A stretch of DNA of 64,000 nucleotides from Mobula hypostoma (lineage: Eukaryota): NCBI RefSeq assembly GCF_963921235.1, contig NC_086111.1:51894001-51958000 (forward strand), in the 5' to 3' direction. Under the pieces are notes generated by a model. The model was not told where the DNA came from. It saw nothing but the letters and a program-made list of their open reading frames with translations, and ran no database searches. The translations under genes were made by a program, and so were the position numbers. Of this stretch, positions 704-27,216 are shown piece by piece. Numbering within the stretch: the first letter of the stretch is position 1; every line of letters starts with the position of its first letter.

Positions 704-754
704 CTGATAACAAGTTGCTTCAGTTTTCCAACATCACCATAATTCAGTAAAAGC
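704..754 (-). CDS. ATP6AP1L: Ac45-family gene exon 8 (51 nt); gene continues beyond the left edge
   Basis: cccag|G CTT TTA CTG AAT TAT GGT GAT...ATC AG|gtatgt; encodes LLLNYGDVGKLKQLVI(R), like ATP6AP1L LSLKFGD...LAI. Confidence 0.85.
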
Positions 755-1034
755 CTGGGTGCATAAAATTGAACAACATGATATTTACTGATAGCTTTGG
801 AATACTGATTAGATGTTGTAAATAATTATTAAGATAATTAATTTAGGTAAATAATGTGACATTTTCCATGATTTGCATTTGTTATCAATATCAAGCAATA
901 AAACACCAGGTATTCCTTTCACTACTTAGCTCTTCCCATCAGTCTTTGCATCCAATTTTCCAATCTTTATTCAAATAGAATGAATCAGCTTGATTTGTTA
1001 CAGCTGTGTGTGCTTTCAAATTATTCATAGTTCA

Positions 1035-1780
1035 AGTGCTATCTGCAAATTCACTGAAGATATCACTGTTGGTGGAATCTCAGATTGCAATGACTACAGG
1101 AGGGAGATAGAACATCTGGTTGAGTGGTGTCACAGCAACAATCTTGTGCTCAACATCAACAAGAACAAAGAATTGATTAAGGACTTCAGGAAGGAGAATT
1201 TGGGAAAACACACACCAGTCTTCACTGAGGGGTCAGTTGTAAGTTCCTGGGCCCAACACATGATGCAATCATGAAGAAGGTGCAACGGTGGCTCGAATTT
1301 GTTTGGAATTTGAGGAGATTTGGTATGTCACCAAAACCTCTTAGATGTACGGTGGAGAGCTGCATCACGGCCTGTATGGAGGCTCCAATGCACAAGATCA
1401 CAAGAAGCTGCAGAGGGTTTATGGTCTTGGCCAGCTCCATCATAGTCACAATCCTCCCCACCGTTGAGAATATCTTCAAGAGGTGGTGCCTCAGGAAGGC
1501 AGCATCCATCCCTAAGGGCCCTCAGCACTCAGGACATGCCCTCTTCCCATTAGCACCATCAAGGAGAAGGTACACGATCCTGAAGACCCACACTCAACAA
1601 TTTAGGAACAGCTTCTTTCCTTCTGCTATCAGAGTTCTTAAAGGTCCATGAGTGTTCCCTCATTAATCTTCTTTGCACTATTTATTTTTGTAATTTATAG
1701 ATTTTTATGTTTTTGTCTTGTACTGCTGCCTCAGAACAAAAAGTTTTCTATCATAAGTTGGACGTAATAATTCTCATTCT
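1035..1780 (+). mobile_element. Rex1/Babar-type LINE 3' fragment (decayed RT C-terminus)
   Basis: ICKFTED..VG, WCHSNNLVLNINKNKELI.DFRK, LRRFGMSPK, RCTVES, FRNSFFPSAIR.L, with frameshifts. Confidence 0.8.
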
Positions 1781-2417
1781 TTTAAACTACTTTTAAAAGC
1801 TCACTAGCTTTTAAAATAAAACTAATCGTTATCCAAACCTCCTGGATTGCATACAATGCCAAAACTAGATCTTGCTAGCGATCATGTTTATTTTCCATTT
1901 CAAATCTAAGTATTCTGTTGTCAAACTTTCAGACTGTGAGATATTGCAAATTGATTTACATTTGCAGTATCTCACAGCCTGAAAGTTTGACAAATTTCAC
2001 AACTTGCCAAGATCTATAGAATAAAATTTAGATGTAAATAAGAAATTCATAAAAGAAAATATATTGCTTCAGAAAACCCTTATAATCAAATCAGTATGGA
2101 AATCTGAAAATAATTTATAACATCCAAAGATAAAGAGGTAAAATGATTTTTCAGGCAATTACAATTATATACTCAAAAACTGAGCAATAGGCAATTTCAT
2201 GCCTGTACCAAGAACTACCATGACTATTTAAACCATTATGTCAATAAAAATAAAATTATCTTTCTTCATTCATATTATTAAAACCTCTGTGATCAGATAT
2301 CATAATAAGGTGTTAAGTGTCTCTATAACCATATGTTTAAAAAGGTTTAATGTCTAGGAAAACATTCTTAATTCAGTGCAAGTTGCCAAAGGTAAAGTGT
2401 AACTTATCACAACTTAC

Positions 2418-2659
2418 GTGGCATGATCCGCAGAACATGTTGAATTCCTTGTATTAACTTTAGCAGTGTTCCCAAATGTTTTGTTAGTCAAATCGATCTC
2501 TGGCTGGTCTCCAAATCTAATTGTTATCTTTTTGGCAGTGAAGAGAATGCATGTTTTTTCACCATCTGTAACATTTATTGGTGAGTACTGGTTCCAATTT
2601 GGGATTTGCAGAAGCTTCCTACCAAAGCTCATGACATCACTGAAAGAATGTCCAGCCAC
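2418..2659 (-). CDS. ATP6AP1L: Ac45-family gene exon 7 (242 nt), start of the luminal domain
   Basis: VAGHSFSDVMSFGRKLLQ...YSPINVTDGEKTCILFTAKKITIRF...DLTNKTFG...VNTRNSTCSADHA|gtaagt. CILF.A and S.CS are ATP6AP1L-type signatures; several N-glycosylation sequons. Confidence 0.9.
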
Positions 2660-4179
2660 CTATAAAATAGTGATTTCTGAACTTAATTTCCAGCAATAGA
2701 TATTAAAATCACTATTGAATTAAACTTGTTCATTGTTTCAACAAAAGAGTTCAAGGTTTAAAACTGCTAGAGATAATTTATTAAATATATGGTAAAGACT
2801 GCATAAATATTGATATGGATACAAGTCCCGTGGATGTTGGACAAATTGTCTGAGAGAAACTCTACTGTGGCCTTTTCACCGCCAAAGTAAATACTGTTTG
2901 AGGTTTCATAACGGAGGTATTAGATTCTCATAATTTCAATGCACCTTATCCACTACTGACGACATACATTACACATTGCATAGAATTAGGTGGACATTTC
3001 AACACAATATTGAAATTACCAATATTTCTCTGTCATATTAAATCAAAGGAAGCACATGCTGCATACAACTAGATGGCAGTCAGCAAATAAATATTTGTTA
3101 ATGGTCTTCATCGAAAAAATGTTGTCCAGGAGACTAAGCACTGGAATGATTTATGTCTCAGAGAAGCAAATTAATTTCATTATGTGAGGTTAAGAATACT
3201 AACATTTTGCTATCAATTTAAGCAGGGGCAAGACCTTCAAAGATCAATTTGACACTCTACACTGGTATAAACCTGATAATCCGGCACATTCGGTGAGTTC
3301 GGCGATGCCAGACTGGCAGATTTTCTGGATGTTACTTTTATTAATATTTCAAGACTTCTAATTCACTTTTTAAAAACATTATACACAGTAGGATAATGGA
3401 TTTTCCAGTGAACAAGATGAGTTGAAAGGGAGTATGGAAGCAGAGACCCTGTTGTTTGCACAGATACGTGTGAACTGAGGCCCTGTTCTGTGGGGTGGAA
3501 GGAAGGAGCAGGAAATGTGGGCTTGACTGTGTTGGGGGGTGGGGAACTGTTGCATGGGGGATAGAAAGGGAGGAGAGGAACCATGGTCCCATTGTGTAAA
3601 AGGGATTGGAAGAACCAAGGCTCTGGCAAGTGGAAAGGGAGGGTAGGAACTGGGACTCCAATGTGCCACCTGGAACACAAGAAATGGTGTGTTAGAGGAA
3701 GTTAACAACCAGGGCCCTGAAAGTGAGTGTGGGAATCAGCCCCAGATAAGAGCAAAGGGAGTATGGCAAACATTATTAGTGTGCTAGATGCCGAGCTATT
3801 AGGACTTCCAAATAGTTGGATAGTGGTTTTACTTCTAATATCTGTAGTTTTAAAAGATTGTTGCAATCACTAGAAGATACAACATTCTCAGGCTTCTAAA
3901 ATGGGCAACAGAAATGCGTCGCCTTTGGATTTTTCCTATGATATTGCAACTGTTCTAATCTGCAACCTGGTGATCATCCTCATCTGTTCTAAAATGTGGG
4001 TTTGTGCTTTGTAAGCACACAACTTTTAACACTTGCAAATTGTTCAGTGACAGATTTGCTAACTCTCTCTTCACCGGCCACCCTAACACCACCACCCGCC
4101 CCCCCCCACCCCACCGCCCTTGCCTTCGCTTCCATAGTTTCTTGGTGATTGAGTTGAGTAACAGTTTATTCACCAAGTA

Positions 4180-4430
4180 GGATAAGCCCTCTTCTTGTTA
4201 CTACCATCAGGGAGGAGTTACATGAGCCTGAAGACCCTCACTCAATACTTCAGAAACAGCTTCTTCCCCTCTAATTCTGAACGGTCCATGAACACTACCT
4301 CACTATTATTTTAGTTACATTCTTTATATATTTTTAACTTATAAAAAAAATGTCTTTGCACAGTACTGCTGCTGAAAAAACAAATTTCATATCATATAAG
4401 GCAGTGATAATAAGCCTGATTCTGGTCCTG
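4180..4430 (+). mobile_element. Rex1/Babar-type LINE 3' tail
   Basis: LPSGRSY.SLKT.T...FRNSFFP motif plus the 3'UTR shared with other copies. Confidence 0.65.
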
Positions 4431-4688
4431 TTTTGGACCAGTGGGCTCAAAGACTAACTATAAGGAGGCACGAAGAAGCAGACTAGAGAATTAGGTATCT
4501 TTCCTCTCCCCATTCTCCTACTGGACGGGTAGATGAGGAGTTCTGAGCTCAGCTATTTGTAACAGCATGTGAACCACGGGCATAAACAGACATGCAGACT
4601 ATAATGAACATCAGAAATTTTAAGAACACATAATTATAAACAAACATTTGGAAAAGAAGAAAGAGGTAGTGGGTTAAGTATTTTATAC

Positions 4689-4771
4689 CTTGGAACTCCA
4701 GCCAGCCATGAAAATAGCTGTATAAGGGACCTCATTTGTTTTGAAAGTATTGACGACCAGTTTAATAACGT
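4689..4771 (-). CDS. ATP6AP1L: Ac45-family gene exon 6 (83 nt)
   Basis: DVIKLVVNTFKTNEVPYTAIFMAGWSSK|gtataa. The VPYTA motif is shared with ATP6AP1 (DVPYTAALTAVRPSR). Confidence 0.85.
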
Positions 4772-5394
4772 CTGTTTAAAAATAAAGCAAATTTTAAATT
4801 ATATGACAAAAAACAGAATATGCTTTTTTCTGATATGACCTACCACATTACCACAATTAGACTACATATCTTTAGTGATCATATTCATAATTTTTATATG
4901 TAATTCATTCTACCTCTTTAGAGCAGTTTGAGATACAATAGCTAAGGGAAAAGGGTAAAGATGAGTTCCTCTCCAATGTCCTTGTCCTTAACTGCTGTGT
5001 TATTCTGCTTCAATTCCTGCCTCGCTGTTAAGGAGGGATGCAAATGATTAATTGCATTTTTTAAAGTTATATTAATAATCATATGACTATTCTCCCAGAT
5101 CACCCAACCGTAGCTCCATGGGAGAACACCATTGCCTGGGCCAGCGCATTCCTGACCTCCACACCTGCAGATTGAAACTCCAGGTATCAGCACTGAGTCC
5201 AGGAGTGAACACAAAAAGCATAAGTTAAATTGAGAGACCCTGAGCTTTGTCTCAGTCATGGCTGTTGCACGTAACAGGGCCACAGAGGATAACAAAGATA
5301 GAAAAGATAACTGAAGGTCAATGATTATTGTTTATATTTTTACTAATTTGTGTTAATGTTCTTATTTAATTTGCATCAGTCAAATTTTTTTGGG

Positions 5395-5980
5395 ATATTA
5401 AACTGGCTGCATCACACACTGGCACGGAAATGCTAATACCCTTGAACAAAAAATCCTGCCAAAAGTAGTGGATATGGCCCAGTCCATCACGGGTAAAGCC
5501 CTCCCCACTATTCAGCACATCTACACTGAGCGTTGTCGCAAGAAACCCGCATCCACCACCCAGGGCATGGTCTCTTCTCACTGTTGCCATCAGGAAGAAG
5601 CTGCAGGAGTCTCTGGACTCACACCACCAGGTTCAGGAACAGTTATTACCCTTAACCATCAGGCTCTTGAACCAAAATGGATAACTTCACTCAACTTCAC
5701 TTACCCCATCACTGAACTATTCCCACAAGCTATGGACTCACTTTCAAGGACTCTTCATCTCATGTTCTTGATATTTATTGTTTATTTATTTATTATTAAT
5801 ATTTCCTTTTTTTCTTTCTTTTTGCATTTGCACATTTTGTTATCTTTTGCATTCTAGTTGTCTGCTATGGTCTTTCACTGATTCTATTATGACTATTGGA
5901 CTTACTGAGTATGCAGGCACGAAAATGAATCAGGGTTATATACGGTGACATACACTTGATAATAAATTAACTTTGAAATA
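5395..5980 (+). mobile_element. Rex1/Babar-type LINE 3' fragment
   Basis: AQSITGKALPTIQHIYTERCRKK plus the typical 3'UTR. Confidence 0.75.
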
Positions 5981-7120
5981 ATCATTTATTAATATTTTTG
6001 CTTTTGTTGGTTTTAAAGACATTTTAATTATTTAAGTATATTTCAACTCTTTTTAAAATGTTTCTGATTATCATTAGAAACATTTGAAAAGCCCTTTAAG
6101 AGCAGTAAGCAGTGAAGGCTACCAAGGCAGTGTAGAGTAGGGCATCAGGATGTGTTGTCTAAGTCCCATTGGCTACTTGCAGACCACTCCGCTTCATGGA
6201 ATAGCCACAATGGGGAGAACTGAGAAAGGTTAATGAATAGTGGGGGTCATGCAGTGAGGTGGGGTGAGGGGGAGCAGGAGATGAATGCATTTATGGGTAA
6301 TAATGTGCACAACCCAGTCCATTTTTATATGAAGAGGATGATCTAATTCCAAATGTGTTATAAAGTTGTACTTGGTCTATTTCTATACTCTGCTGTATAA
6401 CTGATCAGACCCCCAATAACTGACAACATTACCAAACGAGGACTGAGCACTCCAGGTCAATTACAACTCCCACCAAGCCACAGCCAAAATTTTGAATTCC
6501 AAACCGGACAGGAGTAGGTTGTGCCCTGATGTCTACACCTTGGGGAAGTGGTTCAGCAGCACCTACTGTCATACCACCAAAGCCAGCCCATTAACATGGT
6601 GTCTCAGCGAGCATTTGATGCCTTCAGGAAAGAGAGAAAAGATTATATGTGGAAAAATTTAAGGGAAAAATTCGAACCATGGCTTTTTTTTTAGTAAATT
6701 TCTGAATATTTTAAAATATCAGTTCTCTGGCCATCTTAATCTAAAAAGTTTCTATTTCTGAAAAGAGGTGGAAAGTGTTTGCTTTATCCATAGAATTCAG
6801 CTGATTCTATATAAAACAAACATAAAGCAAGTATGCTTAAAGAAAGGCAATTATTAACGTTTTGGACATTTTCAATCGTTGTACACCAATAATGCACCCT
6901 GCTATTTGGCTATCTGGTTGCCAAAAATTATTGGATAATTTTTCTGTCTACAATTTTAATAGCATTAAATTATCAAACAAATAAAAGCTTACAAAAGCAA
7001 TAGACTGGACACCTGAAGTAAATGCTAAACACTGTGAAATTATGAGCTGCTCTGCTACAGGCTAAAGTGAGAAAGCAATGTGAATATTTTGGGTTGTTCA
7101 CCTTTCATTAGAAAGCTTAC

Positions 7121-7161
7121 CATCATCGGCTAGGACTTTGATATCTGCTGTCACTGCAGAT
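7121..7161 (-). CDS. ATP6AP1L: Ac45-family gene exon 5 (41 nt)
   Basis: cttccag|A..G|gtaagc; encodes SAVTADIKVLADD. Phases 2/1 exactly bridge exons 4 and 6. Confidence 0.75.
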
Positions 7162-7329
7162 CTGGAAGAGGAATATTGTGTTTAATCAGTATAAACAATT
7201 ATATAAATTTAACACCTACAATCCCAAATTTGATAATTAGAGACAGGAAAATTAATTACTTCAAAATAAACCATGTAAGAACATGCACTATCAACAAAGA
7301 GTGATAAAAATCTATATCTGGAATCACTA

Positions 7330-8432
7330 GTTTGTGTGCTCATTAATCTTGTAACAGAAGTTTCCAGTACACTGTCTCTACGATTTGATTGATGCAGAAG
7401 CTGTAACTTCTGCCCTCCGGTCTATGTAGTGAAATGTGAAACCCTTGGGCTAGAATACTGTATCCGGAATGAACTATGTCTCAGTGAAGCAGAGTACGCA
7501 GCAATCCCTGATGTCCCTGATCTTTCTCTGAGGGCTTCAATTTTACTTTCCAGAGATTGTACAATAGTCAAGAGGATGGTGGGGAGAGAGAGTCTCAGTG
7601 CCCCCTGTTTCGGTTTTACTGGCAACCCACTTTGGCAAACTCGGTTTCTCAGCTTAGCCGGACAATGGAGACTTCTGCTACATTCCCTCGCTGGGTTGTC
7701 TGTAATCTCAACTGTGCTGACTTTAAAGACTGATAATGCCGACAGGCTAGTCCAGTGGCGTCATATCAACAACTTTGCACTCAACGTCAGCAACTGATTG
7801 TGGACTTCAGGAAGGGGACATAGAGAAAACACACACTCATTGAGGGTTCAGCCATAGAAAGGGCAAATAACTTCAAGTACAGTACCTGGGCATCAACATC
7901 TTAGAGGATACAACCATGCTGAACAGCTGGGAGTTTGAGGAGATTTGGGATGTCCCTAAAGACTCTAGTAAATTCCTACAGATGTACTGTGGAGAGCATT
8001 CTAACTGGTTGTATCATCGTTTGGCACAGAGATGCCAATGCACAGGATCATAAGACTTCAGATGTTATAGACTCAGCCAACTCTAACACAAGCACAAGCC
8101 TCCCCTCCAACAAGGCTATCTTCGAAAGGCAATGCCTCAAGAGGCAGCATCCGTCACTAAGAACCTTCACCACCCAGGACATGTCCTCTTATCATCTGTG
8201 AGCCTGCAGACCCACACTCAATGTTTTAGGATCAGCTTCTTCCCCTCAGCCATTAGAGTTCTGAATGGTCCATGAACCCCTAAATACTACCTCACTATTC
8301 CTGTTTTGCACTAACTATCTATCTAGGAATCTATTACTATAACTTACAGTAATTCAATATGTCTGCTCTGTACTGCTAGCCCAAAACAACTTTCATGAGC
8401 TAATGCCAGTGAAAATAATTGTGATTCTGATC
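7330..8432. mobile_element. Rex1/Babar-type LINE pieces: 5' endonuclease start (minus, ~7330-7735) joined to an RT 3' fragment (plus, ~7735-8432)
   Basis: Minus: LPTILLTIVQSLESKIEALR. Plus: NNFALNVS, RRFGMSLKTLVNSYRCTVESILTGCIIVW. Confidence 0.7.
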
Positions 8433-9296
8433 GTATATGAGAGGTGAAGTTATGGAGGTGGGAGTCGAGGGCCCTGGTGATAGAGAGGAAGCTGACTTCA
8501 GAATCAAATTGGATATCAAACCGCGAGCAATATGGTTCAGTATCTGGCTGGAAGTGATCAGAGGGAGGAAAACAATGGGTAAAACAGCTTTAATTTTCCC
8601 CAATGTTAACACTGCTTAGCATTCTACCGGATAAATGTTTCAAATTACTGTTTCAGAAGATTCAAAATACATTTTCTCTCTGGGGGAGGTGGGGGAATGG
8701 GATGTCGTCTAGACATTGAACAAAGATTGCCAACGAATCTGATGCCAATCTCCCGAACTTGTCAGCCACTGTCACTAATCAGCTCATTGTCACTGGACTG
8801 GGGAGATGGGGTGGGGGTGGAAGACAGGGTTGGGAGGGGGGGAAGGGGCAGCATTGCCTGTGTGGTCACCCCGGCACTCAGCCGTGACTCGGGACAGTGG
8901 ACGCTTTTCCCGTTGTGAGGAAACTTCTGGCAATCAAGGAATGGATTCCAGACAAGCAACATGGTAAATCAGGAATTACAGAGAGGTAGTTCTCAGCACC
9001 AACAGTGTACATGTCACGTCCTTGGATAATGCTGCACATTTATGAGAAATAGAAGAGGGTTAAAGATAAACCCCTGTCAAAATCCAGAGCTACCAGTGTA
9101 CGACAGGATGCAAAATCATTGCAGTTGGTTCACCTGCTATAAATAGATGTGAGACAGTGCTGAAGGTTCAGTTGTCATCGTCGAGACCAGAGGGAAGAAA
9201 ATTGTGGCAGCACAGGAAGAATCAAAATACTGCAAACTCGCTTCATTTAGTTCTAACCCAACTCATGCCCATTGTGCATTTAGAAATGTACATTAC

Positions 9297-9490
9297 CTGT
9301 ACGTTAATGGTAATTTCACTATTAGTAATAACGGTTTAGTGCTGTTCATTTCTGGATTCCAAAATGGTAATTGATTTACATATACTGAATATCCTCCGAG
9401 CTTCTCGTGCACGTATTCAGGGAGCCGATACGTCCAACGCTGGCTTACGGCTGGTAGGACAATCCAAGATGGAGCAGAATCCAGAATATT
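9297..9490 (-). CDS. ATP6AP1L: Ac45-family gene exon 4 (194 nt)
   Basis: NILDSAPSWIVLPAVSQRWTYRLPEYVHEKLGGYSVYVNQLPFWNPEMNSTKPLLLIVKLPLTY(R) vs ATP6AP1 NALDLAPSSLVLPAVDW...LQEKLGAS...NASLPALLLIRLPYT. Canonical ag/gt ends. Confidence 0.9.
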
Positions 9491-9644
9491 CTACGAACAA
9501 AAGAATGAGCTTGCATTTATAAAGTTATATTGCTTCTTTATTGACAATCATTTTTTAATTACTTTTGTATGTAATTGTAGATACTTCTTGAATATATTAC
9601 CATTGATCTTGTAACCTAGAGTCTTTGGCTAACAATCCTCATAC

Positions 9645-9785
9645 CCAAACAAGAGATTCTACAGATGCTGGAAATCTTGAGCAACAGACACAGAGTGCCA
9701 GGGGAACTCAGCAGGTCAGGCAGCATCTGCGGAGGGGAATAAACAGTTGATGTTTTGGGTCGAGACCCTTATTCAGGACTCTGGA
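9645..9785 (-). mobile_element. Penelope-type terminal repeat with decayed hammerhead motif
   Basis: cagatgctggaaatc...gaactcagcaggtcaggcagcatc...gttttgggtcgagaccctt, repeated at several places in the window. Confidence 0.6.
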
Positions 9786-10789
9786 AAATTAACATTGGGA
9801 GATCTTTTAAACTGTAAAAGTTAAGTTTTTTTAACACTTCATTATTTATTTATTTATCTATCTATCATCCTTAATCGTATATGTTGGTTAAAAGATATGT
9901 ATAATAATTTAGATATCATTTATAATTCCTGTTGAAAAATATTGCACTGTGCAAGTTTCACTGCAGATACTTCTATCTAACTGGCTGAAGAATTTCCTCA
10001 TACTTTTCAAATGACAGATGCCACAGAGACCACGTAATAACTTAGGAAAACTAGGAATTGTCACTCAAAATTGAGTACGCAAGGCAAACTGTGAAAACTT
10101 CCCCTGGCACTCTCAGCAGAAATAGTCAGAAAATATGTAGAAATCACCCAATATAACCATACCTCAACTGTATTTTAATGAATGGCATCAAAAACACATA
10201 CGATTGTTAAGAAAGAATAATTATTAAAAGTGGAGAGAGAGGGGAAGCTAGTTCTGCCGTTCATAGAAATGAATATATGTATATATGTTGGAACTTTGCG
10301 TTTGATCATCTGAATAGAGCTCATTCATATGTGCAGGCTTCTGTGAGCAAGGTGTTTGTAACCTGGGTATAGCCTGTATTTAACTATTTGACCACAATCT
10401 TGTCCAGACATAACTGCAGGAGTACTTCGGTGCAGTGTCCAAGGGGCAACCATCTTTACAGACCTTCCTTTCACCCATTCTTTCATCCTTAAGATCAGAA
10501 GTGGCGTGTTGTTCACCATCCTATTACATTCGCAACTCCTCAGAAAACTTAGCACATGGCAGTCAGGTACAGATTGGTAAGAGACAAGTGACAATCATGC
10601 CATAAAATATCTAGGCAATTACCATCCGCAATTGGACTTCGATGGGCAAACCATTCCTTCGATTCCCACTATGAACATCCTGGGAGTCTACAATAAGCAG
10701 TAACTTAGTCAGCCAGAGCAAATCAGAGGCTATGCAGACTGTGGCAATCAGTCATCTCCCCATTTTCATTATTTATAAGATACAGGAAG

Positions 10790-11010
10790 CCAGCTGGGGG
10801 TGTAGTGGCATCAGCACCAGACTTCGAGATGAGTCCTGGGTTTGAATCTGGCCGGATCCTTGCACACTTTCCATCTGTGCTGGGTTACTCTTCAAGCTAC
10901 CAACTCGGCCTCGTAAAAACAAACAAAATGCTAAAGAAATGGCAAACTTGCCACCTGATGCGCCACAAGGCGCGGAGGGGAACAGCGATATCACAGACAC
11001 AGGAAGGAGC
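10790..11010 (+). mobile_element. tRNA-derived SINE
   Basis: A-box-like GGTGTAGTGG and B-box-like GGGTTTGAATC, followed by a non-tRNA body. Confidence 0.55.
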
Positions 11011-11823
11011 ATGGTGGAACACTTTCCACGTGCCTGAATGAATGAAAATCCAATAACACTCAAGTACCTTCAACAGTTTACAGGACCAACTGGTGCAATA
11101 ATTGGTTTCTCATAAACCACACTAATTATTCATTCCTTCATCAGCAATGCGCCATTGGGGCTGTGCTCTACAAAAATGTCTAGTTATTCATCTGGGCTGA
11201 TCCGACAGCACCTTCCAGACCTGTGACCTACAGCAGAGAAGGCTAAAGGGCTGCAGATGGACCACCGTCTTGATTCAGATATATAATGTCATTGACGTAG
11301 TTACTTCATCATCAGGTCTTAGTCCTACAACACTCCCATTGTAGAAGGGCCTTTATTGGGAGCAGTTTAGTACTTTCAGGAGTGATTCACCACCACCATG
11401 CAAGGGGCATACCTCAAGAATAAATTTAACCAAAAAAAATTCAATGAGAAGTTTGGGGAAGTGGAAAGGAAATAAGCATTACATTCTAGTTAATTATTCT
11501 CTGCTTATCTACAGTGGAAGACATTCAATATTGTGAATTCAAAGCTTATGAATTATGGCCAGTATATTACTCATTGTGCATTTAATCAGTACTAAAAAAT
11601 GAATTCCACATTTCCCAATAAATTGGTCCTTATAAAAGCAGTAATAAAATTAATTTCTGAGTTATTCGTTAAGCTCTGAATATTATTCACAATTTAATCT
11701 TTCCTTTCAGGTCCAGAGATGAAAACATATTACCTAAAAAAAATCTTGATCACTTCATGCTTTGTTGTAATAAATAAACGAAGTAAATTTGGTAATATGA
11801 TCATGAAATAGGATCTATCATAC

Positions 11824-11886
11824 CTGAATGTTAGAAAATGTGTGGGCCACACTGGCATCAGAATTCATAATATCGTTGGTGTTCAG
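11824..11886 (-). CDS. ATP6AP1L: Ac45-family gene exon 3 (63 nt)
   Basis: ttttcag|CTG..CAG|gtatga. LNTNDIMNSDASVAHTFSNIQ resembles ATP6AP1 LSIEDF...SAFSNLE. Phase 0/0. Confidence 0.8.
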
Positions 11887-12369
11887 CTGAAAATACAAGG
11901 TTGAAATGTTGAAATAGAACATAGATTTTCATTTCTTTTTGAACATAAGCAATTAACTCAGTGTTCATAATTTGGTGCAAAATGTGCACTTTGAATGAAT
12001 CATTTAGTTGATAAATATTAAATCAGTTATTACAATATAACTTGATTACTTTGGATACCAGGTGTAGAATGACATACATGTTTAAACACACAAGTCCACA
12101 ACTGACAACACCAAAAAGCATCTTTGAATTAGAAAGTTAGATACAAAGTTTTGTGCAAAATTCTTAGATGTATATATAAAAAAGACAAATTTCATGACAT
12201 ATGTGAGTGATGATAAACCCGATTCTCTATGGGTCTCTATTGTGGACAGAGAGTGAGAAGGGGGGAATCATGGTTGGGAAAAAGGTGAGGGGAAGAGGGC
12301 GGGGGCAGGAAGCATCAGAGAGACATTCTGTAATGATCAAATAACCAATCATTTGGAATCAAAAGACAT

Positions 12370-13010
12370 TGACTGTGGGTGTTGTACAATGAACCAGAAT
12401 TGATTAGAAAGCTTAAAGTAAAAGAACCCCAAGGAGCAAGTGATCATAATAGATTACAAATTGATCGGGGCATCAAGGGATATGGTGAGAGGGCAGGTGT
12501 ATGGGGTTGAATGGGTTCTGGGATCAGCGGTGATGAAATGGCAGAGTGGACTCGATGGGCTGAATGGCCTAATTCTGTTCCTTTGTCTTATGGCCTTATG
12601 AACTGGGGTCTCAGGGCGGGGTGTGTCTTCCTCCACTTCACTCCCTGCCCTGGCACGGCTTCTCTGCCACCTGTCCCATACCCCTCCGCCATTCCCAACA
12701 TCCTTTGCTCCTGCCAGATTTACAAACTCGCTCTCCGCTCGATATTGACAAAGACAGCAAGTCTTAGGTACCCAACACGAGAGTGGTGAATCTGTTGAAT
12801 CCTCTGCCACAGGAAACAGTTGAGGCCAGTTCATTGGCTATATTTAAGAGGGAGTTAGATATGGCCCTTGCGGCTAAAGGGATCAGGGGGTATGGAGAGA
12901 AGGCAGGTACAGGGTTCTGAATTGGATGATCAGCCATGATCATACTGTATGACGGTGCAGGCTCAAAGGGCTGAATGGCCTACTCCTGCACCTATTTTCT
13001 ATGTTTCTAA
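12370..13010 (+). mobile_element. CR1 LINE fragments, including two 3' ends
   Basis: gggctgaatggcctactcctgcacctattttctatgtttcta tail (12970-13010) and a related tail ending ~12600; 12370-12450 resembles CR1 ORF2. Confidence 0.75.
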
Positions 13011-13493
13011 CACCTTTTCACAGTATTATATGATTTCATATTTCAAAAAGGTTGACTGTTGTAAAGGTATTTTCAAGTAAGAAATATGCTTATTCCTTTG
13101 TGCCCAGTCTTTCGTGAAATTAACTGTTGGTTTACCTACTGACAGCTCGTGTTTGTACGTAGCACTGGGAATTAGATGCGTTCTCTGTTTTTGTTTTCTA
13201 ATTTCAAAACGCATCTGCATTGTCACAGGGAAGCATAAAGTGGGAATTAGTGGAACACATCCCATTCCAAGTTCAAAATTATAATTGTTGGAATTTTGTA
13301 GAAATATTTTATATTACATTTATTATTTCATTACAGCGTAATATTGATCAAATTATTAAAATCAACATTAAAATATTGTACACACACAAAATGCCGGCTT
13401 TCCAGCATCTGTAGATTTTTTTCTTGTTTGTGATTAAAATAGTGTGTTCTTCAATGTTTAATTTTGTACTAATGAGGCTAAATGTATATCTTT

Positions 13494-14673
13494 TGTCATG
13501 ATCCAGTCCGTGAAGTCCGCATTCCGGTTCACGGTTCGGCCTGTGGACTCAGGACTCTGGGTCTTCCAGCTGTCCCTCGTTTGGTTGAGTTAAGCATAGG
13601 CACCTGATTCCCATCTTGGGGCTTGGAATACAAGTAGCCTTGGGGTTGAGTGTGAGCTGCTGGTCTGTCTCATCAGTTCCCCTGGGAGTAACTTACTGGT
13701 GGAAGGCTAGAGTGGCCACTTGTCATCTTTAGGCTGTGTTGGAGAACCATTGCTTCATGGAGCCTTGCTGTTGGTAGTCGGAACTGTCTTTGCGGTATGG
13801 ATTTGGCTGTTTCCTGGGCCAGCTGAGTGGCTGCCAGCTACTCCGAGCTAGGTAGGGATCCGGCTGCTTCTGTAGCCAGCTGAGGTTGCTGGCTGAACTG
13901 AGACTCAGAGCTTCCCTGGAGCAGAGATGGAACTCTCTGTTGTTCTCTGGTGTTTGTCTCTTCTTGTCCTTGCCTCTATGGGGTAAGCCAGGCTGTTTTG
14001 CCGTTGACCTGTGGGGGGGATCTGTCTTGTCCTTGCCTCTGTTGAGTAAGTCCGGCCGTTCTGCCATTACCTGACGGAGGAACCTGTCCCACCTTGGTGT
14101 GGAGATGAAGTTGAGTCCCGGCTCGTCTTAGGATAAGTCCTGGCTCTATGTCTATGTTGTGTCCTGTCTCATGTTGGTGTCAGGTTAAAGATGAGTCCCG
14201 GCTTGTCGAAGGATAAGTCCCAGCTCTACGTTGATGTTTGGTTCCCAGTCTGTCTCTAAGCTCCAAGAACACTAGCCTCCAGGATCCCAAGCCAAGCTCC
14301 AAGAACACAAGCCTGAAGTCCCCAGCCTCAAGCCTCAAGAGCAAAGACCCCAGCCTGTCTCCAAGCTCAGGCCTCTCGACCCCAGCCACATCCTGTCCTT
14401 TAGCCATGTTATGTCCTTGCCTGGTTCTGGGGTCTGAGCCAGAGGCAAGACCCAGGTTCTGGGTCCTTGTCCAGTCTCGGGCTCATAGTCCAAGCCTTGT
14501 CTCCTAGTCCATGGTTCCTAGTCCTGGTCCTGCCTTCCATAGCCCAAGTCTGCGTTCTTGTCCCTGCTCCTGGTCTGAATCCTGTCAGGTCCCTACTCTG
14601 GTCAAGTCCTGTTCCTTGTACTTCAGTGTCTGTGTCTTGCATTTGGGTCCGTTTCCAACGCCCCATTGTGACA
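13494..14673. mobile_element. Solo LTR (1180 bp), 5-bp TSD
   Basis: Termini TGTCA...TGACA flanked by TCTTT at 13489-13493 and 14674-14678; internal short degenerate repeats; no pol sequence. Confidence 0.8.
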
Positions 14674-14952
14674 TCTTTGTTTTTTTAAACATATTGAATT
14701 ATATTGAAGCCGTTATAAATTCAATATGTGTGTCTACATTCATTGGTATTGTTTCCGATTTTTACCGGAATCAAGAATTTGGAAGTATATTGTATCTTGG
14801 GGAGCAGAAATACTATCACATTAAATAATTACAGATGTAACCTGACTTTGCTGCTTGAGGTGAGAGGAAAGACTCTGAAGGCTGGGAACATTTGGCCTTG
14901 GGAAGATAGTGTATCACCTCGAACACATTTGCTGAATTATGTAGGTAAATAC

Positions 14953-15200
14953 GGGCGCCGCTGTAGTGTAGAGGTTTTAGCGCGACGCCGTTACAGCCGG
15001 GGCGTCGGAGTTCAATGCCGGCGTCCTCCGTAAGGACATCTTCCCCGTGGCATGCAGGGGCTTTCTCCCACAGTACAAAGACCCACCGGTTGGTAGGTGA
15101 ATTGGTCATTGTAAATTGTCCCCTGATTAGGCTAGGGTTAAATGTGTTGGATGCTGGCGGAGCAGTTCAAAGAGCCTATTCTGCGCTGTATTTCTTTTTT
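14953..15200 (+). mobile_element. tRNA-derived V-SINE-like element
   Basis: gtagtgtagagg (A box), ggagttcaatgcc (B box), central ttctcccacagtacaaagac V-domain-like motif. Confidence 0.6.
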
Positions 15201-15637
15201 TTAAAAAAGTACAGTATCTTGATTTATGGTTTTGAAATTTGAAGATGGATTTCAGAGAGATATTTCAGTACTATTTGAAGAGGGAGAGCAGAAAACGGTG
15301 AAGACGTTTGATATTTCAGGTCTTATTCCACAGATACTGCCTGACCTGAAATCTTTTTTGTTTCAGTTTTTAAACTCGTGCATTTATATTTTAATGACAT
15401 ACCCCAAAGGCTACCGTAATATTTGTTGTGGAACTGACTGCGAAGTGTTCTATAGGTCTAACTGCATCAGAAGGTGTGGGTAGATATTGCAGCATATAAT
15501 CTTCAAGATTCTGGCTCTGGGAGTCGGACTGGCTATAAGCACCTACCTTCTTGCGCCTTTAAAGTATTGCAGCATGATACTTATTTCCTTTATTTAAACT
15601 AGCTTTTAAACAGTTTAACAATTTTTGTATCATTTAC

Positions 15638-15764
15638 CGTGTCCAGCCAGAACAGTATCACTTTCTTCTGACTTCTGTTGAATACGGGATTGAGATACCA
15701 GGATAGTTCCGATACCTCTTTATTGTGCTCTCTGTGTCCATTCTCCACAGTTTTCCACAAGGCT
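15638..15764 (-). CDS. ATP6AP1L: Ac45-family gene exon 2 (127 nt)
   Basis: ag|A..ACG|gtaaat. ALWKTVENGHREHNKEVSELSWYLNPVFNRSQKKVILFWLDT aligns without gaps to ATP6AP1 [42 protein letters not shown]. Confidence 0.85.
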
Positions 15765-16238
15765 CTATGTAAAATTGAAGGAAACCACACATTCTTATCA
15801 AATCCGGAAATAGAACAGTTACAGTCCCGCATTGGGAAGTCGGGTGGGAAAAATTGGCGGTTAACTGAAGTCATCAAATAGCATTTCAACCAGGACATCA
15901 GTCCGACATCTAGTGGCAGGATGCTTGCCAGTCAATTAATTTATCACAGAATAACAATTTATGTACTTACACGGTCAAATTAGATCTGAAAGATAAATTC
16001 AGTTAAGGAGCTGCTAAATATTTAGCCCAAAGAAGTGCGTTTATTTTTTTTCGTTTGTTTTTGAACATTGTTTCAGTGCCAGTGTTCCTGATATTACATC
16101 ACAGCGAAATATTTTGTCCCTTTCCCAGATTGAACAGTCACATAGATTTTTTGATTCTTAATTGTGCATCTTGCAGAAATAATGCTCGTCAAAACCAGAG
16201 TGTTAACTCCCGGCCACAATGTCTCGAATTCCAGCTTA

Positions 16239-16855
16239 CCATAGAAACTACAGCACAGAAACAGGCCTTTTGGCCCTTCTTGGCTGTGCCGAACCATTTT
16301 CTGCCTAGTCCTACCGACCTGCACACGGACCATATCCCTCCATACACCTCCCATCCATGTATCTGTCCAATTTATTCTTAAATGTTAAAAAAAGAACCCG
16401 CATTTACCACCTCGTCTGGCAGCTCATTCCACACTCCCACCACTCTCTGTGTGAAGAAGCCCCCCGCAATGTTCCCTTTAAAATTTCCCCCCTCACCCTT
16501 AACCCATGTCCTCTGGTTTTTTTTTTCTCCCCTTGCCTCAGTGGAAAAAGCCTGCTTGCATTCACTCTATCTATACCCATCATAATTTTATATACCTCTA
16601 TCAAATCTCCCCTCATTCTTCTATGCTCCAGGGAATAAAGTCCTAACCTATTCAACCTTTCTCTGTAACTGAGTTTCTCAAGTCCTGGCAACATCCTTCT
16701 AAACCTTCTCTGCACTCTTTCAATCTTATTTATATCCTTCCTGTAATTTGGTGACCAAAACTGAACACAATACTCCAGATTCGGCCTCACCAATGCCTTA
16801 TACAACCTCATCATAACATTCCAGCTCTTATACTCAATAATAACATTCCAGCTCT
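16239..16855 (-). mobile_element. CR1 LINE 3' fragment
   Basis: LYKALVRPNLEYCVQFWSPNYRKDINKIERVQRRF...RMRGDLIEVYKIM...TRGHGLRV. Confidence 0.9.
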
Positions 16856-16999
16856 TCTTACAGTGTTATTAATTCAGTAACTTCATTATCAAATATACTC
16901 GCTCCCATTCTGATTAGAAAACATGTAAGAAAAATTGCGAGAAGGGAGCTGACAATAGAATGTGGAACAAAGACACCCTGAGCCAATAGGCTGGTCCTG

Positions 17000-17600
17000 G
17001 ATTTATTTCATAATTTACTGTCATAATTTACATATTACTGTTTAACTATTTTTGGTTCTATTACTATTTATTATTTATGGTGCGACTGTAACGAAAACCA
17101 ATTTCCCCCGGGATGAATAAAGTATGACTATGACTATCCTGGTAAACCTCTTCTGCACCTTCTCCAAAGCCTCGACATCCTTCTTATAAGGAGGCAACCA
17201 GACTGTAAGCAATGCTCAATATAACTAGAGATTTATAACGCTACATCAGAACTTCCTGACTTTTGAACTCAAGGCCACATGCCTTCTCAACCACCCTATC
17301 AACCTTCACAGCCATTCTCCGGGAGTTACGAACCTTACCCGGAGATCCACATGCTCATTAACACTGTTAAGCGTCTTGCCCGTAACACTGTACAGTCTCT
17401 TTACATTTGATCCACCAAGCTGTGCAATACTTCACATTTGATCGGGTTAAACTCCATCTGCCATTTCTCCATCCATATCTACAATTGATCTACATCCCTC
17501 TGTGTTCGTTGCCAGTCTTCTACACCATCCACAACACCAACAATCTTCTTATCTGCAAATTTACCGACCTGACCATTTTCATCCAGGTCATTTATATACC
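17000..17600. mobile_element. Rex-type tail (plus, ~17000-17136) abutting a decayed CR1 RT fragment (minus)
   Basis: cccccgggatgaataaagtatgactatgactat tail, followed by reverse-strand CR1-like coding remnants. Confidence 0.55.
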
Positions 17601-18964
17601 GGTTATTTATATTAAGGCTGAACTTATTTTTTAACAATGATATATTCGGGTCCTGCTGCAGAAATATATTTTATTCAGTTAAAACCAAAACTCTGTATCC
17701 TGGATGTTATCGGGATTATGTGGGAAATTGTCAATTGAGATTAGTGACTGAAATAAATGGTAGTCGGGCAAGCATAAATGAAACAGCTTTTGTCTTACTC
17801 CCTGATTATTTTTGGTACGAATATTTACCGTGTTTATTTATCCACGAATTAAACCCATCTATGAACAAATTGCATAGTCCGATAAGAGCCAAAACACTTT
17901 ATTCAACAATTATGATAAAAATGAAATTGATAGAACGGGCGTACATTGTATATTCTGGTGCGAGGACAGTTATAGAAAGGTAACTTACCACTAAACTGTA
18001 GATATGGGTGTATAATTTTAAAAAAAATAAATATGATGTTTACCGGGTTACCAAATATGCGTTTTGTATCTCCTGTATTGAGCATAGGAGCTAGCCACGT
18101 AGGCAAATCGGGAACTGGAAGATGCAACCCTGTCTAATAGTGTCGGGCCACTGCCTCACAATACAACTGACATCTCCGAATGCCTAATACAAGATTAAAG
18201 AACTCACATGTCCACAATGACCTGCCTAATCGGCCAAGTCCCATCTGTACAGCCCCGCTGGGCCTCCAGATTAAACTCGTAATTAGAAAATATAGTACAT
18301 AGGTCTGCATAGTTCCGTTCAAAATAGAAGCAAGCAGATACTCTATATACACCCACCCCCCATTTTCCATTCAAAGTCGAGTTAAAATCAGAAAATAAAA
18401 AGAACAAATATTAGAAATCACCAGCTGTACCCAATGGTTCCCACAAGGGATTAACATTTCTGATGTGGATCCTGTCACCGGTGCATTTAAAGGATTTTCT
18501 GTTTTATTTAACTGCTATTCCTGGAACCGACAAGGCAGAAGGACAAGTTAGAAGATTAAAACACGGAATTAAACGAACATTCCAAAAATAGATAATAATA
18601 AAATAATAAGTGATTCGAACTTCCTATTAAATCTATATTCATTTTCAAAGTCTTTATTACAATAATTGATAACCTAAATAGTTAGTTTCTTTGCGTTTAC
18701 AGTATTAATCTCGCTTTTTATGAAACTCTTAAAGGTTAATCCGGTCAGCATATGGTCATTTGGACAGCAAACCGCAAGTGGAATAAAATGTTCACTTTAT
18801 TATTCCCTGTCCATTTAGAATAAAATATGACGCTGATTTTGTCTTCTTTGTAAACCGCAATAATTACTCTCAACACGTCAGAAATTTATGGAGATATGTT
18901 GGTAAAATATTTGGAAATCACTTGTACAAGTTACATTGCTTGCATCTTGAAAGTATACACTTAC

Positions 18965-19065
18965 TCTGCTGTTGACCACATTATAACGGGCACTGTTTCT
19001 TCATTCATCATTGAAAACTTTATGAGAAGCGAAAATATTAAGCACTGAATGCGATGGACTTCCAT
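18965..19065 (-). CDS. ATP6AP1L: Ac45/ATP6AP1-family gene (ATP6AP1L-type), exon 1: signal peptide + VPVIMWS
   Basis: MEVHRIQCLIFSLLIKFSMMNEETVPVIMWSTA(E), then a GA|gtaagt donor. EETVPVIMWST matches ATP6AP1 EQQVPLVLWSS. Phase 2 joins exon 2. Confidence 0.85.
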
Positions 19066-19461
19066 TTATAAATAGCTCCGCTGCGAGCTGCACTACCCGG
19101 AGCTCTCAATGGGAATTTAAAGCGCTCTGTCTGCGAAGAGAGCGTATTCCCTCTGATTGACGGCGATGATTCCCAATCAGCGATGGGTATCAACACAATC
19201 AACCAATTATGTTCACTAAAAGGCGGGACTAGAGTTCTACAGTTTTTAAAGTCAAAAAGACTATTACTTTGCAGATTGTAACATTTTTATTCGAACTATG
19301 AACGTATTTTCTGTCTGCTTTTTGCCCAGCATTGAGTAAGAGGTAGTTTTGTTTGTGTTTTGCGGCAGGCGGAAGCGGGCTGCCGGCGGGGTCCTTGCTG
19401 CTGGTAAGAGACGCGTCGCGGGGCCGGCCCTTTCTTTTGGACGAGCGGCGGAGCCTGCAGC
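19066..19461. promoter_or_regulatory. Bidirectional CpG-rich promoter between the Ac45-family gene and RPS23; 5'TOP initiator
   Basis: Divergent ATGs at 19065(-) and 19462(+). Pyrimidine tract CCCTTTCTTTT at 19428-19438, GABP/ETS-like GCGGAAGC at 19369-19376, CCAAT boxes ~19170-19210. CpG-rich sequence extends to ~19710. Confidence 0.8.
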
Positions 19462-19465
19462 ATGG
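19462..19465 (+). CDS. RPS23: 40S ribosomal protein S23 (uS12) exon 1 (ATG G)
   Basis: ATGG|gtgagt immediately downstream of the TOP tract; phase 1 joins exon 2. Confidence 0.9.
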
Positions 19466-21296: not shown

Positions 21297-21554
<258 letters not shown>

Positions 21555-21902
21555 TAAGTATTTTTAAATGGAGGAACTATTATAGCTAAAGGTAGCACCC
21601 TTTTGAGGCAGCTGTGTACTACATATTTTTCTTAACATCTTAAAGTGAATTGTTAGATGATTAATCTCTTGCTAAGTGCTTGGAGTACTCTTGACTGGGA
21701 CTTGTAACTGAAAGTATAAAATACTTTGGTACAACTCAACTAGGTCTAGTAGTTTACTCAGTTGGTTGTAAGGGCCACCATGTACAGTGAAAACTACATG
21801 TCAGTTTGTGTTTTATTTTTAAGTAAAATGTACCAAGAGATTTTGCCGTTCTTGGAGGGGACAATGAAATAAGTGAGCTTAGTGTGGAAATGTAGAAAAT
21901 AA

Positions 21903-22070
<168 letters not shown>

Positions 22071-27041: not shown

Positions 27042-27188
<147 letters not shown>

Positions 27189-27216
27189 ACCTGTCATTAT
27201 AGTAACAAATATGGAA

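Follow-up and report, generated by a model that had tools for sequence, protein, structure and literature searches.

The 64-kb stretch of Mobula hypostoma DNA analysed here, hereafter the window, carries eight exons of ATP6AP1L on the minus strand (19065 to 704) and, head-to-head with them, RPS23 on the plus strand. The features are as follows.

18965 to 19065, minus strand: ATP6AP1L exon 1 (101 nt), containing the ATG and a hydrophobic segment that resembles a signal peptide; the luminal part opens with the conserved 'VPVIMWS'
15638 to 15764, minus strand: exon 2 (127 nt), in which the N-terminal alpha/beta domain begins; Ac45 residues 47-91 aligned (PDB chains)
11824 to 11886, minus strand: exon 3 (63 nt), N-terminal domain; 100% identity to residues 77-97 of the RefSeq Mobula protein
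9297 to 9490, minus strand: exon 4 (194 nt), core of the N-terminal domain; its residues 1-63 align end-to-end with Ac45 121-183 (E 4.5e-6)
7121 to 7161, minus strand: exon 5 (41 nt), with RNA-like contig coverage
4689 to 4771, minus strand: exon 6 (83 nt), encoding the helix and strand with which the N-terminal domain ends
2418 to 2659, minus strand: exon 7 (242 nt), a linker without furin motif, after which the VAS1 luminal domain begins; Ac45 residues 237-290 aligned
704 to 754, minus strand: exon 8 (51 nt), luminal domain; last exon within the window
19066 to 19461, no strand assigned: putative divergent promoter region, CpG-rich, ~400 bp between the ATP6AP1L and putative RPS23 start codons
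21393 to 21566, plus strand: RPS23 exon 2, by phmmer against PDB uS12/RPS23 (E 7e-31, residues 2-55)
about 21897-22049 and 27042-27191, plus strand: further RPS23 exons, by tblastx against the RPS23 locus of spotted gar (hereafter gar)

Canonical AG/GT splice sites are found throughout the ATP6AP1L model, and its internal exons are preceded by a pyrimidine-rich tract and AG and followed by GTAAG or GTATG. Spliced together, exons 1 to 8 amount to 902 nt, which translate into 300 residues without a stop codon. The translation matches residues 1-300 of the 456-residue RefSeq entry 'ATPase H+ transporting accessory protein 1 like a [Mobula hypostoma]' with 100% identity, and that protein was annotated independently of the eight-exon reading; exon 1 was also recovered at 100% identity in a tblastn search with residues 1-34 of that protein. 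The eight exon sizes and the single open frame proposed in the first-pass annotation of this DNA were thus confirmed. Its description of the gene as full-length applies to the N-terminal domain, but the coding sequence as a whole is incomplete in the window. Since no stop codon is reached and residues 304-456 of the RefSeq protein gave no tblastn match within the window, the gene continues past the window start, and the final ~156 residues are coded outside. Two further coding exons would be expected beyond position 1, as in gar. A pseudogene reading was considered and rejected on account of the intact frame, the canonical splice sites, sequence conservation and expression in the form of putative RNA contigs. 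A gene model for ATP6AP1L already exists in RefSeq for M. hypostoma and at least eight other elasmobranchs.

On the plus strand, a putative RPS23 exon-1 ATG was located at position 19462, where ATGG is followed directly by gtgagt after a pyrimidine tract; the ATP6AP1L start codon is 397 bp away. The GC content of the segment 19251-19750 is 0.57, with a CpG observed/expected ratio of ~1.0. The head-to-head arrangement of RPS23 and ATP6AP1L recognized at first pass is seen both in the window and in gar, where the gene order is dynein heavy chain - RPS23 - ATP6AP1La - PDE12. When the window was searched by tblastx with 2.9 kb from the end of the gar locus, a short query including the final 1.4 kb of the gar dynein gene, no match was returned.

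The 456-residue protein would begin with a signal-peptide-like segment, followed by a luminal alpha/beta N-terminal domain of ~180 residues (N-domain; Ac45 or 'BIG1_N' type), which exons 2-6 encode. After a linker that lacks a furin motif would come a LAMP-like beta-sandwich luminal domain, in which the cysteine pair is conserved, and then a single transmembrane helix and a short tail. The whole protein matched Pfam PF05827 (VAS1 luminal domain) over residues 238-386 with 119.7 bits, and exon 7 alone scored 29.4 bits (cutoff 26.9). Residues 401-436, coded outside the window, matched PF20520 (Ac45/VOA1 transmembrane domain) with 43.3 bits (cutoff 25). Just ahead of the transmembrane helix, the pair C349 and C399 is invariant in a 37-sequence alignment; a cysteine pair in this position is a hallmark of the Ac45 family (PMC2812417). 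The Ac45-type N-domain was identified from the alignments of exons 2 and 4 and from BLAST searches, in which residues 1-203 matched ATP6AP1 proteins with E values down to 4e-31. Searched singly against a Pfam set without PF27676 (BIG1_N), the N-terminal exons gave no domain match. Precomputed PF27676 matches exist for four shark orthologues, with none recorded for the Mobula protein itself.

The structural comparison with Ac45 suggested at first pass yielded a fold match, as the AlphaFold model of the Mobula protein matches mammalian VAS1 across residues 3-449. It also matches Drosophila VhaAC45 across residues 36-428, and its match to human VAS1L is limited to residues 272-447; model confidence is moderate in the N-domain (pLDDT about 60-80). 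Furin releases the N-domain from Ac45, and ATP6AP1 carries an RPSRVxR furin motif at the domain junction. We found no RXXR at this junction in seven elasmobranch ATP6AP1L proteins, and none anywhere in the Mobula protein. Lacking a furin site, the ray protein would not shed its N-domain, in contrast to Ac45. By homology, the transmembrane helix and the membrane-proximal luminal domain may place the protein in the V0 sector.

We searched for transcript-like support among contigs from runs presumed to be RNA, with tissues coded or unknown. The contig mapping covered exons 5 to 7, and the junction of exons 6 and 7 was worked out from the lengths of the contigs and the depth per bin. All of the coverage falls on exons. 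The ends of two contigs (X1 record 2 and X3 record 26) exactly match the borders of exon 6, three contigs end at the exon 7 donor site, and a 1156-nt contig runs from exon 7 onward through that site. A 191-nt RNA-like contig was placed by depth arithmetic over the last 13 nt of exon 4, exons 5 and 6 and 52 nt of exon 7. We infer that exons 5, 6 and 7 are joined in RNA-like contigs; the predicted link between exons 1-6 and exon 7, tested with these contigs, is borne out by the one that spans the end of exon 4 to exon 7.

These data bear on whether the first-pass and automatic annotations fused two genes, one coding for the N-domain only (exons 1-6) and the other for a short ATP6AP1L starting near exon 7. 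In favour of such a fusion, the junction support comes from contigs and not from reads, and a RefSeq entry of Pristis pectinata (251 residues) consists of the N-domain part alone. Nevertheless, the frame is open with matching phases through all eight exons, contig 26 of X3 fits exons 4, 5, 6 and 7 within 0.01 depth units, and contig 2 of X1 has the same layout. Moreover, RefSeq models from at least eight elasmobranchs join both halves, no start codon with a signal peptide is found immediately 5' of exon 7, and the exon pattern copies the single-gene layout of ATP6AP1. We therefore consider a fusion of two genes highly improbable and treat the eight exons as parts of one gene.

The coding exons of the ray gene were compared with those of gar and echidna genes (sizes in nt).

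Gar ATP6AP1: 119/127/75/194/41/86/260/51/232/210
Ray ATP6AP1L: 101/127/63/194/41/83/242/51/...
Gar ATP6AP1La: 101/41/86/242/51/244/234
Echidna ATP6AP1L: 95/41/62/242/51/...

The exons of 127, 194, 41 and 51 nt are identical in size between ray ATP6AP1L and gar ATP6AP1, the others differ by multiples of 3 (12 nt for exon 3, with 63 nt in the ray and 75 nt in gar), and the phases are the same. The similarity of exon sizes and intron phases to ATP6AP1 stated at first pass was thereby borne out. In the gar and echidna ATP6AP1L genes, exons 1, 5, 6, 7 and 8 are kept and exons 2-4 are absent, such that exon 1 joins straight to the 41-nt exon. The suggestion that bony vertebrates lack exons 2-6 was thus correct for exons 2-4 but not for exons 5 and 6, which are retained with 41 nt and with 86 or 62 nt, respectively. 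In the ray, exons 2-4 are present, open and conserved; they represent 128 codons, or 384 nt, and their loss is therefore in frame. At the DNA level, this loss was established in two bony vertebrates, gar and echidna.

At the protein level, the annotated bony-vertebrate ATP6AP1L sequences among the matches listed, more than 90 with every bony-vertebrate class represented, have 280-410 residues and match no more than the C-terminal ~50% of the shark protein. BLAST found no N-domain homology in bony-vertebrate ATP6AP1L proteins, and N-domain profile HMMs run against 20 osteichthyan ATP6AP1L proteins gave nothing better than E 0.04, with those matches at inconsistent positions. Together with the 224 residues of human ATP6AP1L (reviewed VAS1L), these results agree with the first-pass statement that the bony-vertebrate proteins are shorter and lack most of the N-domain.

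The ray gene would be ordinary if bony-vertebrate ATP6AP1L did have exons 2-4 that annotation and cDNA work had overlooked. Many ATP6AP1L models are indeed automatic predictions, with several isoforms each and N-termini that vary. However, tblastn searches of the 29-kb gar locus, its 4.3-kb intron 1 included, with the N-domains of ray, shark and coelacanth returned nothing below E 0.7. The direct passage from exon 1 to the 41-nt exon in the gar and echidna proteins, the short reviewed human sequence and the half-length coverage of the shark protein likewise speak against overlooked exons, which have very little chance of being the explanation. Instead, bony-vertebrate ATP6AP1L would have lost exons 2-4 in frame, and its signal peptide would now lead into a degenerate linker (exons 5-6) and then into the C-terminal half.

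We built separate trees for the two halves of the protein. The chondrichthyan ATP6AP1L sequences in them are from elasmobranchs. In the C-half tree, chondrichthyan and osteichthyan ATP6AP1L form one clan with support 100/99 and species-tree order within it, and the osteichthyan group has support 95/89. The C-terminal half thus groups with ATP6AP1L and not with ATP6AP1, as had been proposed from its sequence motifs. In the N-half tree, the chondrichthyan ATP6AP1L sequences cluster with one another as a separate clan (100/100), whose stem is long (0.79). This clan falls outside both the Ac45LP-like group (98/96) and the gnathostome ATP6AP1 group (93/87), the latter with six ATP6AP1 sequences from chondrichthyans among its members. 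ATP6AP1 proper is present in cartilaginous fishes as a group and an Ac45LP-like paralogue in elasmobranchs, with neither retrieved from Mobula itself. The Mobula gene is not a member of ATP6AP1 proper, as it falls outside that clade in both half-trees and lacks RPSRVxR. The first-pass annotation had envisaged a distinct V-ATPase subunit of cartilaginous fishes; on the evidence of the trees, the Mobula gene is an ordinary ATP6AP1L orthologue and not an extra subunit.

Alternatively, the N-terminal exons might be a later gain of elasmobranchs, taken over from ATP6AP1 or the Ac45LP-like paralogue through gene conversion or exon capture. The N-domain of Heterodontus ATP6AP1L shows 45% identity to Latimeria ATP6AP1 and 30% to the elasmobranch Ac45LP-like protein, a somewhat greater closeness to ATP6AP1 that is in line with such an event. 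Nevertheless, the position of the elasmobranch clan in the N-half tree, on its long stem outside both groups, implies no recent capture from either, and any transfer must predate the split of cartilaginous and bony fishes. In addition, exons 1, 5 and 6 of bony-vertebrate ATP6AP1L keep ancestral sizes and phases, as predicted by a deletion of exons 2-4, and Drosophila VhaAC45 aligns through the N-domain, which is thus ancestral to the Ac45 family. A secondary gain is therefore very unlikely, and the N-terminal exons of the ray gene are best regarded as inherited.

Between batoids and sharks, the N-domain of ATP6AP1L shows 64-67% identity, compared with 62-69% for the Ac45LP-like paralogue. This equal conservation argues for constraint on the N-domain, as far as sequence identity can indicate. 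A word-indexed search of limited sensitivity with the N-domain (residues 24-203) returned elasmobranch ATP6AP1L proteins alone.

Altogether, we consider it probable (about 0.88) that Mobula ATP6AP1L is an orthologue with the ancestral Ac45 architecture, and that exons 2-4 were later lost in bony-vertebrate ATP6AP1L. Its architecture would be that of the ancestral ten-exon Ac45 layout. As the three N-terminal exons are still in the ray, its gene shows the form that preceded the shortening. The ancestral state proposed at first pass is thus supported, and it withstood the three tests set for it in advance, on the affinity of the C-terminal half, on the presence of exons 2-6 in bony vertebrates and on transcripts linking exons 1-6 to exon 7. 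We found no paper describing the loss of ATP6AP1L exons, and our literature search returned nothing joining ATP6AP1L with sharks and nothing on the evolution of atp6ap1la or atp6ap1lb.

To our knowledge, ATP6AP1L/Ac45RP is among the least understood V-ATPase accessory proteins, and we know of no role for the Ac45 N-domain. The ray gene and the exon maps of gar and echidna offer a simple origin for the short protein, by in-frame loss of exons 2-4 after the divergence of cartilaginous and bony fishes. More speculatively, and with the odds rather against it, elasmobranch ATP6AP1L might be a functional, uncleaved, full-length Ac45 paralogue, with one frame-preserving deletion of exons 2-4 in the osteichthyan stem lineage producing the neuron-specific Ac45RP and bony vertebrates giving up the role of the N-domain. 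If so, that role, for instance expression in a wider set of tissues or an interaction in the lumen, would rest on the N-domain kept in the elasmobranch protein. The ray protein represents a natural 'long form' with which to probe N-domain function. Since RefSeq already annotates the gene in Mobula and other elasmobranchs, this is a tidy point of gene-structure evolution and not a new system.

Several known systems resemble the ray protein. Drosophila VhaAC45RP (CG31030), an Ac45-family protein, lacks a furin site, binds V0 and is specific to neurons (PMC8541823); going by that description, it is an independent insect paralogue and not an orthologue. Ac45LP of Xenopus and birds is likewise a full-length, ten-exon Ac45 paralogue uncleaved by furin, but it is a separate ohnologue located at IQUB-SLC13A1 (PMC2812417), and the elasmobranch Ac45LP-like gene groups with bird Ac45LP in both half-trees. 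ATP6AP1/Ac45 (V-ATPase subunit S1; PDB 6wm2, 6vq6 and 7u8o) has in common with the ray protein the ten-exon layout and the two-domain luminal architecture followed by a transmembrane helix. Nevertheless, overall identity is only about 32-37%, and the transmembrane helix and tail of the ray protein have diverged (36-40% identity), compared with 61% between ATP6AP1 and the Ac45LP-like protein. Lastly, ATP6AP1L/Ac45RP shares with the ray protein its C-half phylogeny, RPS23 synteny, VAS1 luminal domain, cysteine pair and transmembrane helix, as well as the 242-nt and 51-nt exons and the lack of a furin motif, the latter stated for Ac45RP in PMC8541823, which cites Jansen et al. 2021 for the mouse and human protein. 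The difference is that the ray protein has 456 residues, compared with about 224-365 in bony vertebrates, and that its gene keeps exons 2-4 and, with them, a complete Ac45-type N-domain.

The eight coding exons of ATP6AP1L (E1 to E8) lie on the minus strand of the window and have exactly the sizes proposed in the first-pass annotation:

E1, 19065-18965, minus strand
E2, 15764-15638, minus strand
E3, 11886-11824, minus strand
E4, 9490-9297, minus strand
E5, 7161-7121, minus strand
E6, 4771-4689, minus strand
E7, 2659-2418, minus strand
E8, 754-704, minus strand

A pyrimidine tract and an AG precede every internal exon, and GTAAG or GTATG directly follows each exon. As had been claimed, the exons splice into one open frame, of 902 nt and 300 stop-free codons, which is still open at the window edge with no closing stop inside the window. 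Over its whole length, the 300-residue spliced model shows 100% identity to P0052 (residues 1-300), a 456-residue Mobula hypostoma protein named 'ATPase H+ transporting accessory protein 1 like a' in RefSeq, and the RefSeq annotation corresponds exactly to the splicing first proposed. Residues 304-456 of P0052 have no match in the window, which places the 3' part of the gene past position 1. Annotated copies exist for Mobula, Heterodontus, Pristiophorus, Mustelus, Rhincodon, Chiloscyllium, Carcharodon and Cetorhinus, and Pristis has an annotated fragment.

The proposed head-to-head arrangement with RPS23 was also found:

19462, plus strand, likely exon-1 ATG of RPS23, in a CpG-rich stretch 397 bp from the ATP6AP1L ATG
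21393-21566, plus strand, RPS23 exon 2
~21897-22049 and ~27042-27191, plus strand, further RPS23 exons

The same divergent pair is present in the spotted gar, where the genes read dynein heavy chain - RPS23 - ATP6AP1La - PDE12; an ATP6AP1L/RPS23/dynein order may thus be a conserved one. In humans, ATG10, RPS23 and ATP6AP1L share a common cis-eQTL (PMC8345087).

Contigs of four public runs that contain exon 7, guessed to be RNA, were aligned to positions 1300-7250. Repeats aside, contig depth is zero over the introns and present over E5, E6 and E7. Three contigs stop at 2417, the E7 donor site, with one base ambiguous, and the contig of run X1 has 919 more letters past this site. On E6, contig 26 of run X3 (191 nt, depth 10.8) carries 54 letters before and 52 after. 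The depths predicted from this layout are 85 x 10.8/199 = 4.61 for the E6 bin (observed, 4.61), 66 x 10/199 + 52 x 10.8/199 = 6.14 for the E7 bin (observed, 6.14) and 2.46 for the E5 bin (observed, 2.64). The bin depths thus reproduce a layout in which this contig passes from the end of E4 through E5 and E6 into the start of E7, indirect but numerically tight evidence that includes the E6-E7 junction. A separate record of X1 (record 8, depth 2, 7135-7250) crosses from intron 4 into exon 5 without splicing, as pre-mRNA, a retained intron or traces of genomic DNA in this run might do.

Interspersed repeats are found at 1300-1700, 4086-4400 and 5280-5880, in introns 6 and 7. The summed contig depth on them is very high, reaching ~18,000 at 5479-5677, and variant letters are numerous; the repeats probably belong to an abundant family of SINEs or LINE tails. 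Other repeated features of the window are as follows:

16404-16814, minus strand, ORF in intron 1 resembling the C-terminal part of a LINE reverse transcriptase
38139-47549, plus strand, LINE-type ORF cluster with endonuclease and reverse-transcriptase pieces of at least two nested elements, coinciding with strong positive GC and AT skew at 36-48 kb
50615-50931, imperfect, purine-rich tandem array of AGAGCGAGAG-type units of 38, 66 or 104 nt, with 70-84% matches

Even taken one at a time, exons indicate the Ac45 family, and their matches are collinear: E2 corresponds to residues 47-91 of Ac45 (ATP6AP1), E4 end to end with residues 121-183 (E 4.5e-6) and E7 with residues 237-290, and E7 alone is above the Pfam VAS1_LD threshold. 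An exhaustive phmmer search with E7 collected 47 proteins, and the named relatives were obtained by a second search using the best full-length E7 match as the query. In P0052, PF05827 covers residues 238-386 and PF20520, the Ac45/VOA1 transmembrane domain, residues 401-436. The protein also has eight sequons for N-glycosylation, a single C-terminal segment of strong hydrophobicity and the cysteine pair C349/C399, which is invariant. The AlphaFold model of the ray protein (37 input sequences, mean pLDDT 70) shows a beta-sandwich and a transmembrane helix with high confidence (residues ~230-440), and an N-domain of alternating strands and helices with moderate confidence (residues ~47-198). The closest Swiss-Prot models are those of mammalian VAS1, over both domains, followed by LAMP proteins over the C-terminal domain. 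The structural alignment with Drosophila VhaAC45 spans residues 36-428, which makes the N-domain ancestral to the Ac45 family.

The ray protein is likely to be a type I membrane glycoprotein that would dock in the V0 sector, as Ac45 and mouse Ac45RP do, the latter according to PMC8541823, citing Jansen 2021. ATP6AP1 proteins harbour RPSRVxR at the domain junction. No RXXR motif was found there in seven of seven elasmobranch ATP6AP1L proteins, or anywhere in that of Mobula, and the N-domain would stay permanently attached, unlike that of Ac45. The ray-shark identity of this domain (64-67%) equals that of the Ac45LP-like paralogue (62-69%), and it therefore looks to be under constraint. Several ray-finned-fish ATP6AP1L proteins, P0085 (Amia), P0132 (Polypterus), P0073 (Electrophorus) and P0101 (Anguilla), have an RX[KR]R motif (RSRR, RAKR, RTKR) immediately upstream of a conserved 'KLLQ', where the exon-7 region begins. 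It is a possible proprotein-convertase site, at which the degenerate linker would be cut off, and is absent in the sarcopterygian and elasmobranch orthologues.

The two halves were placed in separate trees, as initially suggested. In the maximum-likelihood tree of the C-terminal halves of 45 proteins, a single clan (100/99) unites the seven elasmobranch 'like a' proteins with 20 bony-vertebrate ATP6AP1L proteins, and the branching inside this clan agrees with the species tree, cartilaginous fishes first and then the lobe-finned and ray-finned lineages. In the N-half tree, the elasmobranch ATP6AP1L proteins are a separate clan (100/100) on a long stem, outside both the gnathostome ATP6AP1 group (93/87), which includes six chondrichthyan ATP6AP1 proteins, and the Ac45LP-like group (98/96). 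This placement makes the N-domain as deep in history as the C half and rules out its recent capture. The first-pass reading of an ATP6AP1L orthologue that keeps the N-domain from before its loss is essentially right. Its further suggestion of a distinct cartilaginous-fish subunit did not hold: the gene is the ordinary orthologue of ATP6AP1L and adds no further subunit. Other cartilaginous fishes have ATP6AP1 proper and an Ac45LP-like gene as well; none of the sequences retrieved for these two is from Mobula.

The 'S1-like' proteins of elasmobranchs (P0110, P0150, P0158, P0160), Polypterus (P0141) and Acipenser (P0153) cluster, in the C-half (100/99) and N-half (98/96) trees alike, with a 'subunit S1' protein from a bird. 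Going by PMC2812417, in which Ac45LP is reported in tetrapods only, the bird protein should be this paralogue. Based on this grouping, Ac45LP appears to predate tetrapods and to occur in cartilaginous and early ray-finned fishes as well. A lamprey sequence is on a long branch on the Ac45LP-like side.

More than 90 listed bony-vertebrate ATP6AP1L proteins, from mammals, birds, reptiles, amphibians, lungfish, coelacanth, bichir, sturgeon relatives, gar, bowfin and teleosts, have 280-410 residues and span about half of the shark protein. They are shorter, as had been stated, with no N-domain similarity by BLAST or profile HMM. The reviewed human VAS1L has 224 residues, and its match is limited to residues 272-447 of the ray model. 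Coding exons of the gar and echidna genes were placed exactly on genomic DNA.

Coding exon sizes (nt)
Gar ATP6AP1: 119/127/75/194/41/86/260/51/232/210
Ray ATP6AP1L: 101/127/63/194/41/83/242/51/...
Gar ATP6AP1La: 101/41/86/242/51/244/234
Echidna ATP6AP1L: 95/41/62/242/51/...

In the gar and echidna maps, exons 2-4 (384 nt or 128 codons in the ray) are missing, which leaves the gene in frame, and exon 1, the 41-nt exon 5 and the exon-6 equivalent are retained. The N-terminal loss first proposed therefore stands for exons 2-4 and not for exons 5-6, whose peptides show only faint residual similarity in bony vertebrates, e.g. near the exon 5/6 border. No relic of exons 2-4 was detectable in the gar locus. 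In the literature searched, we found no description of the retained N-domain or of the exon 2-4 loss; the finding is real, a small, clean addition on the origin of the short ATP6AP1L. Ray ATP6AP1L shares four exon sizes with gar ATP6AP1, and every other size differs by a multiple of three, which bears out the equal phases and near-identical sizes noted at the outset.
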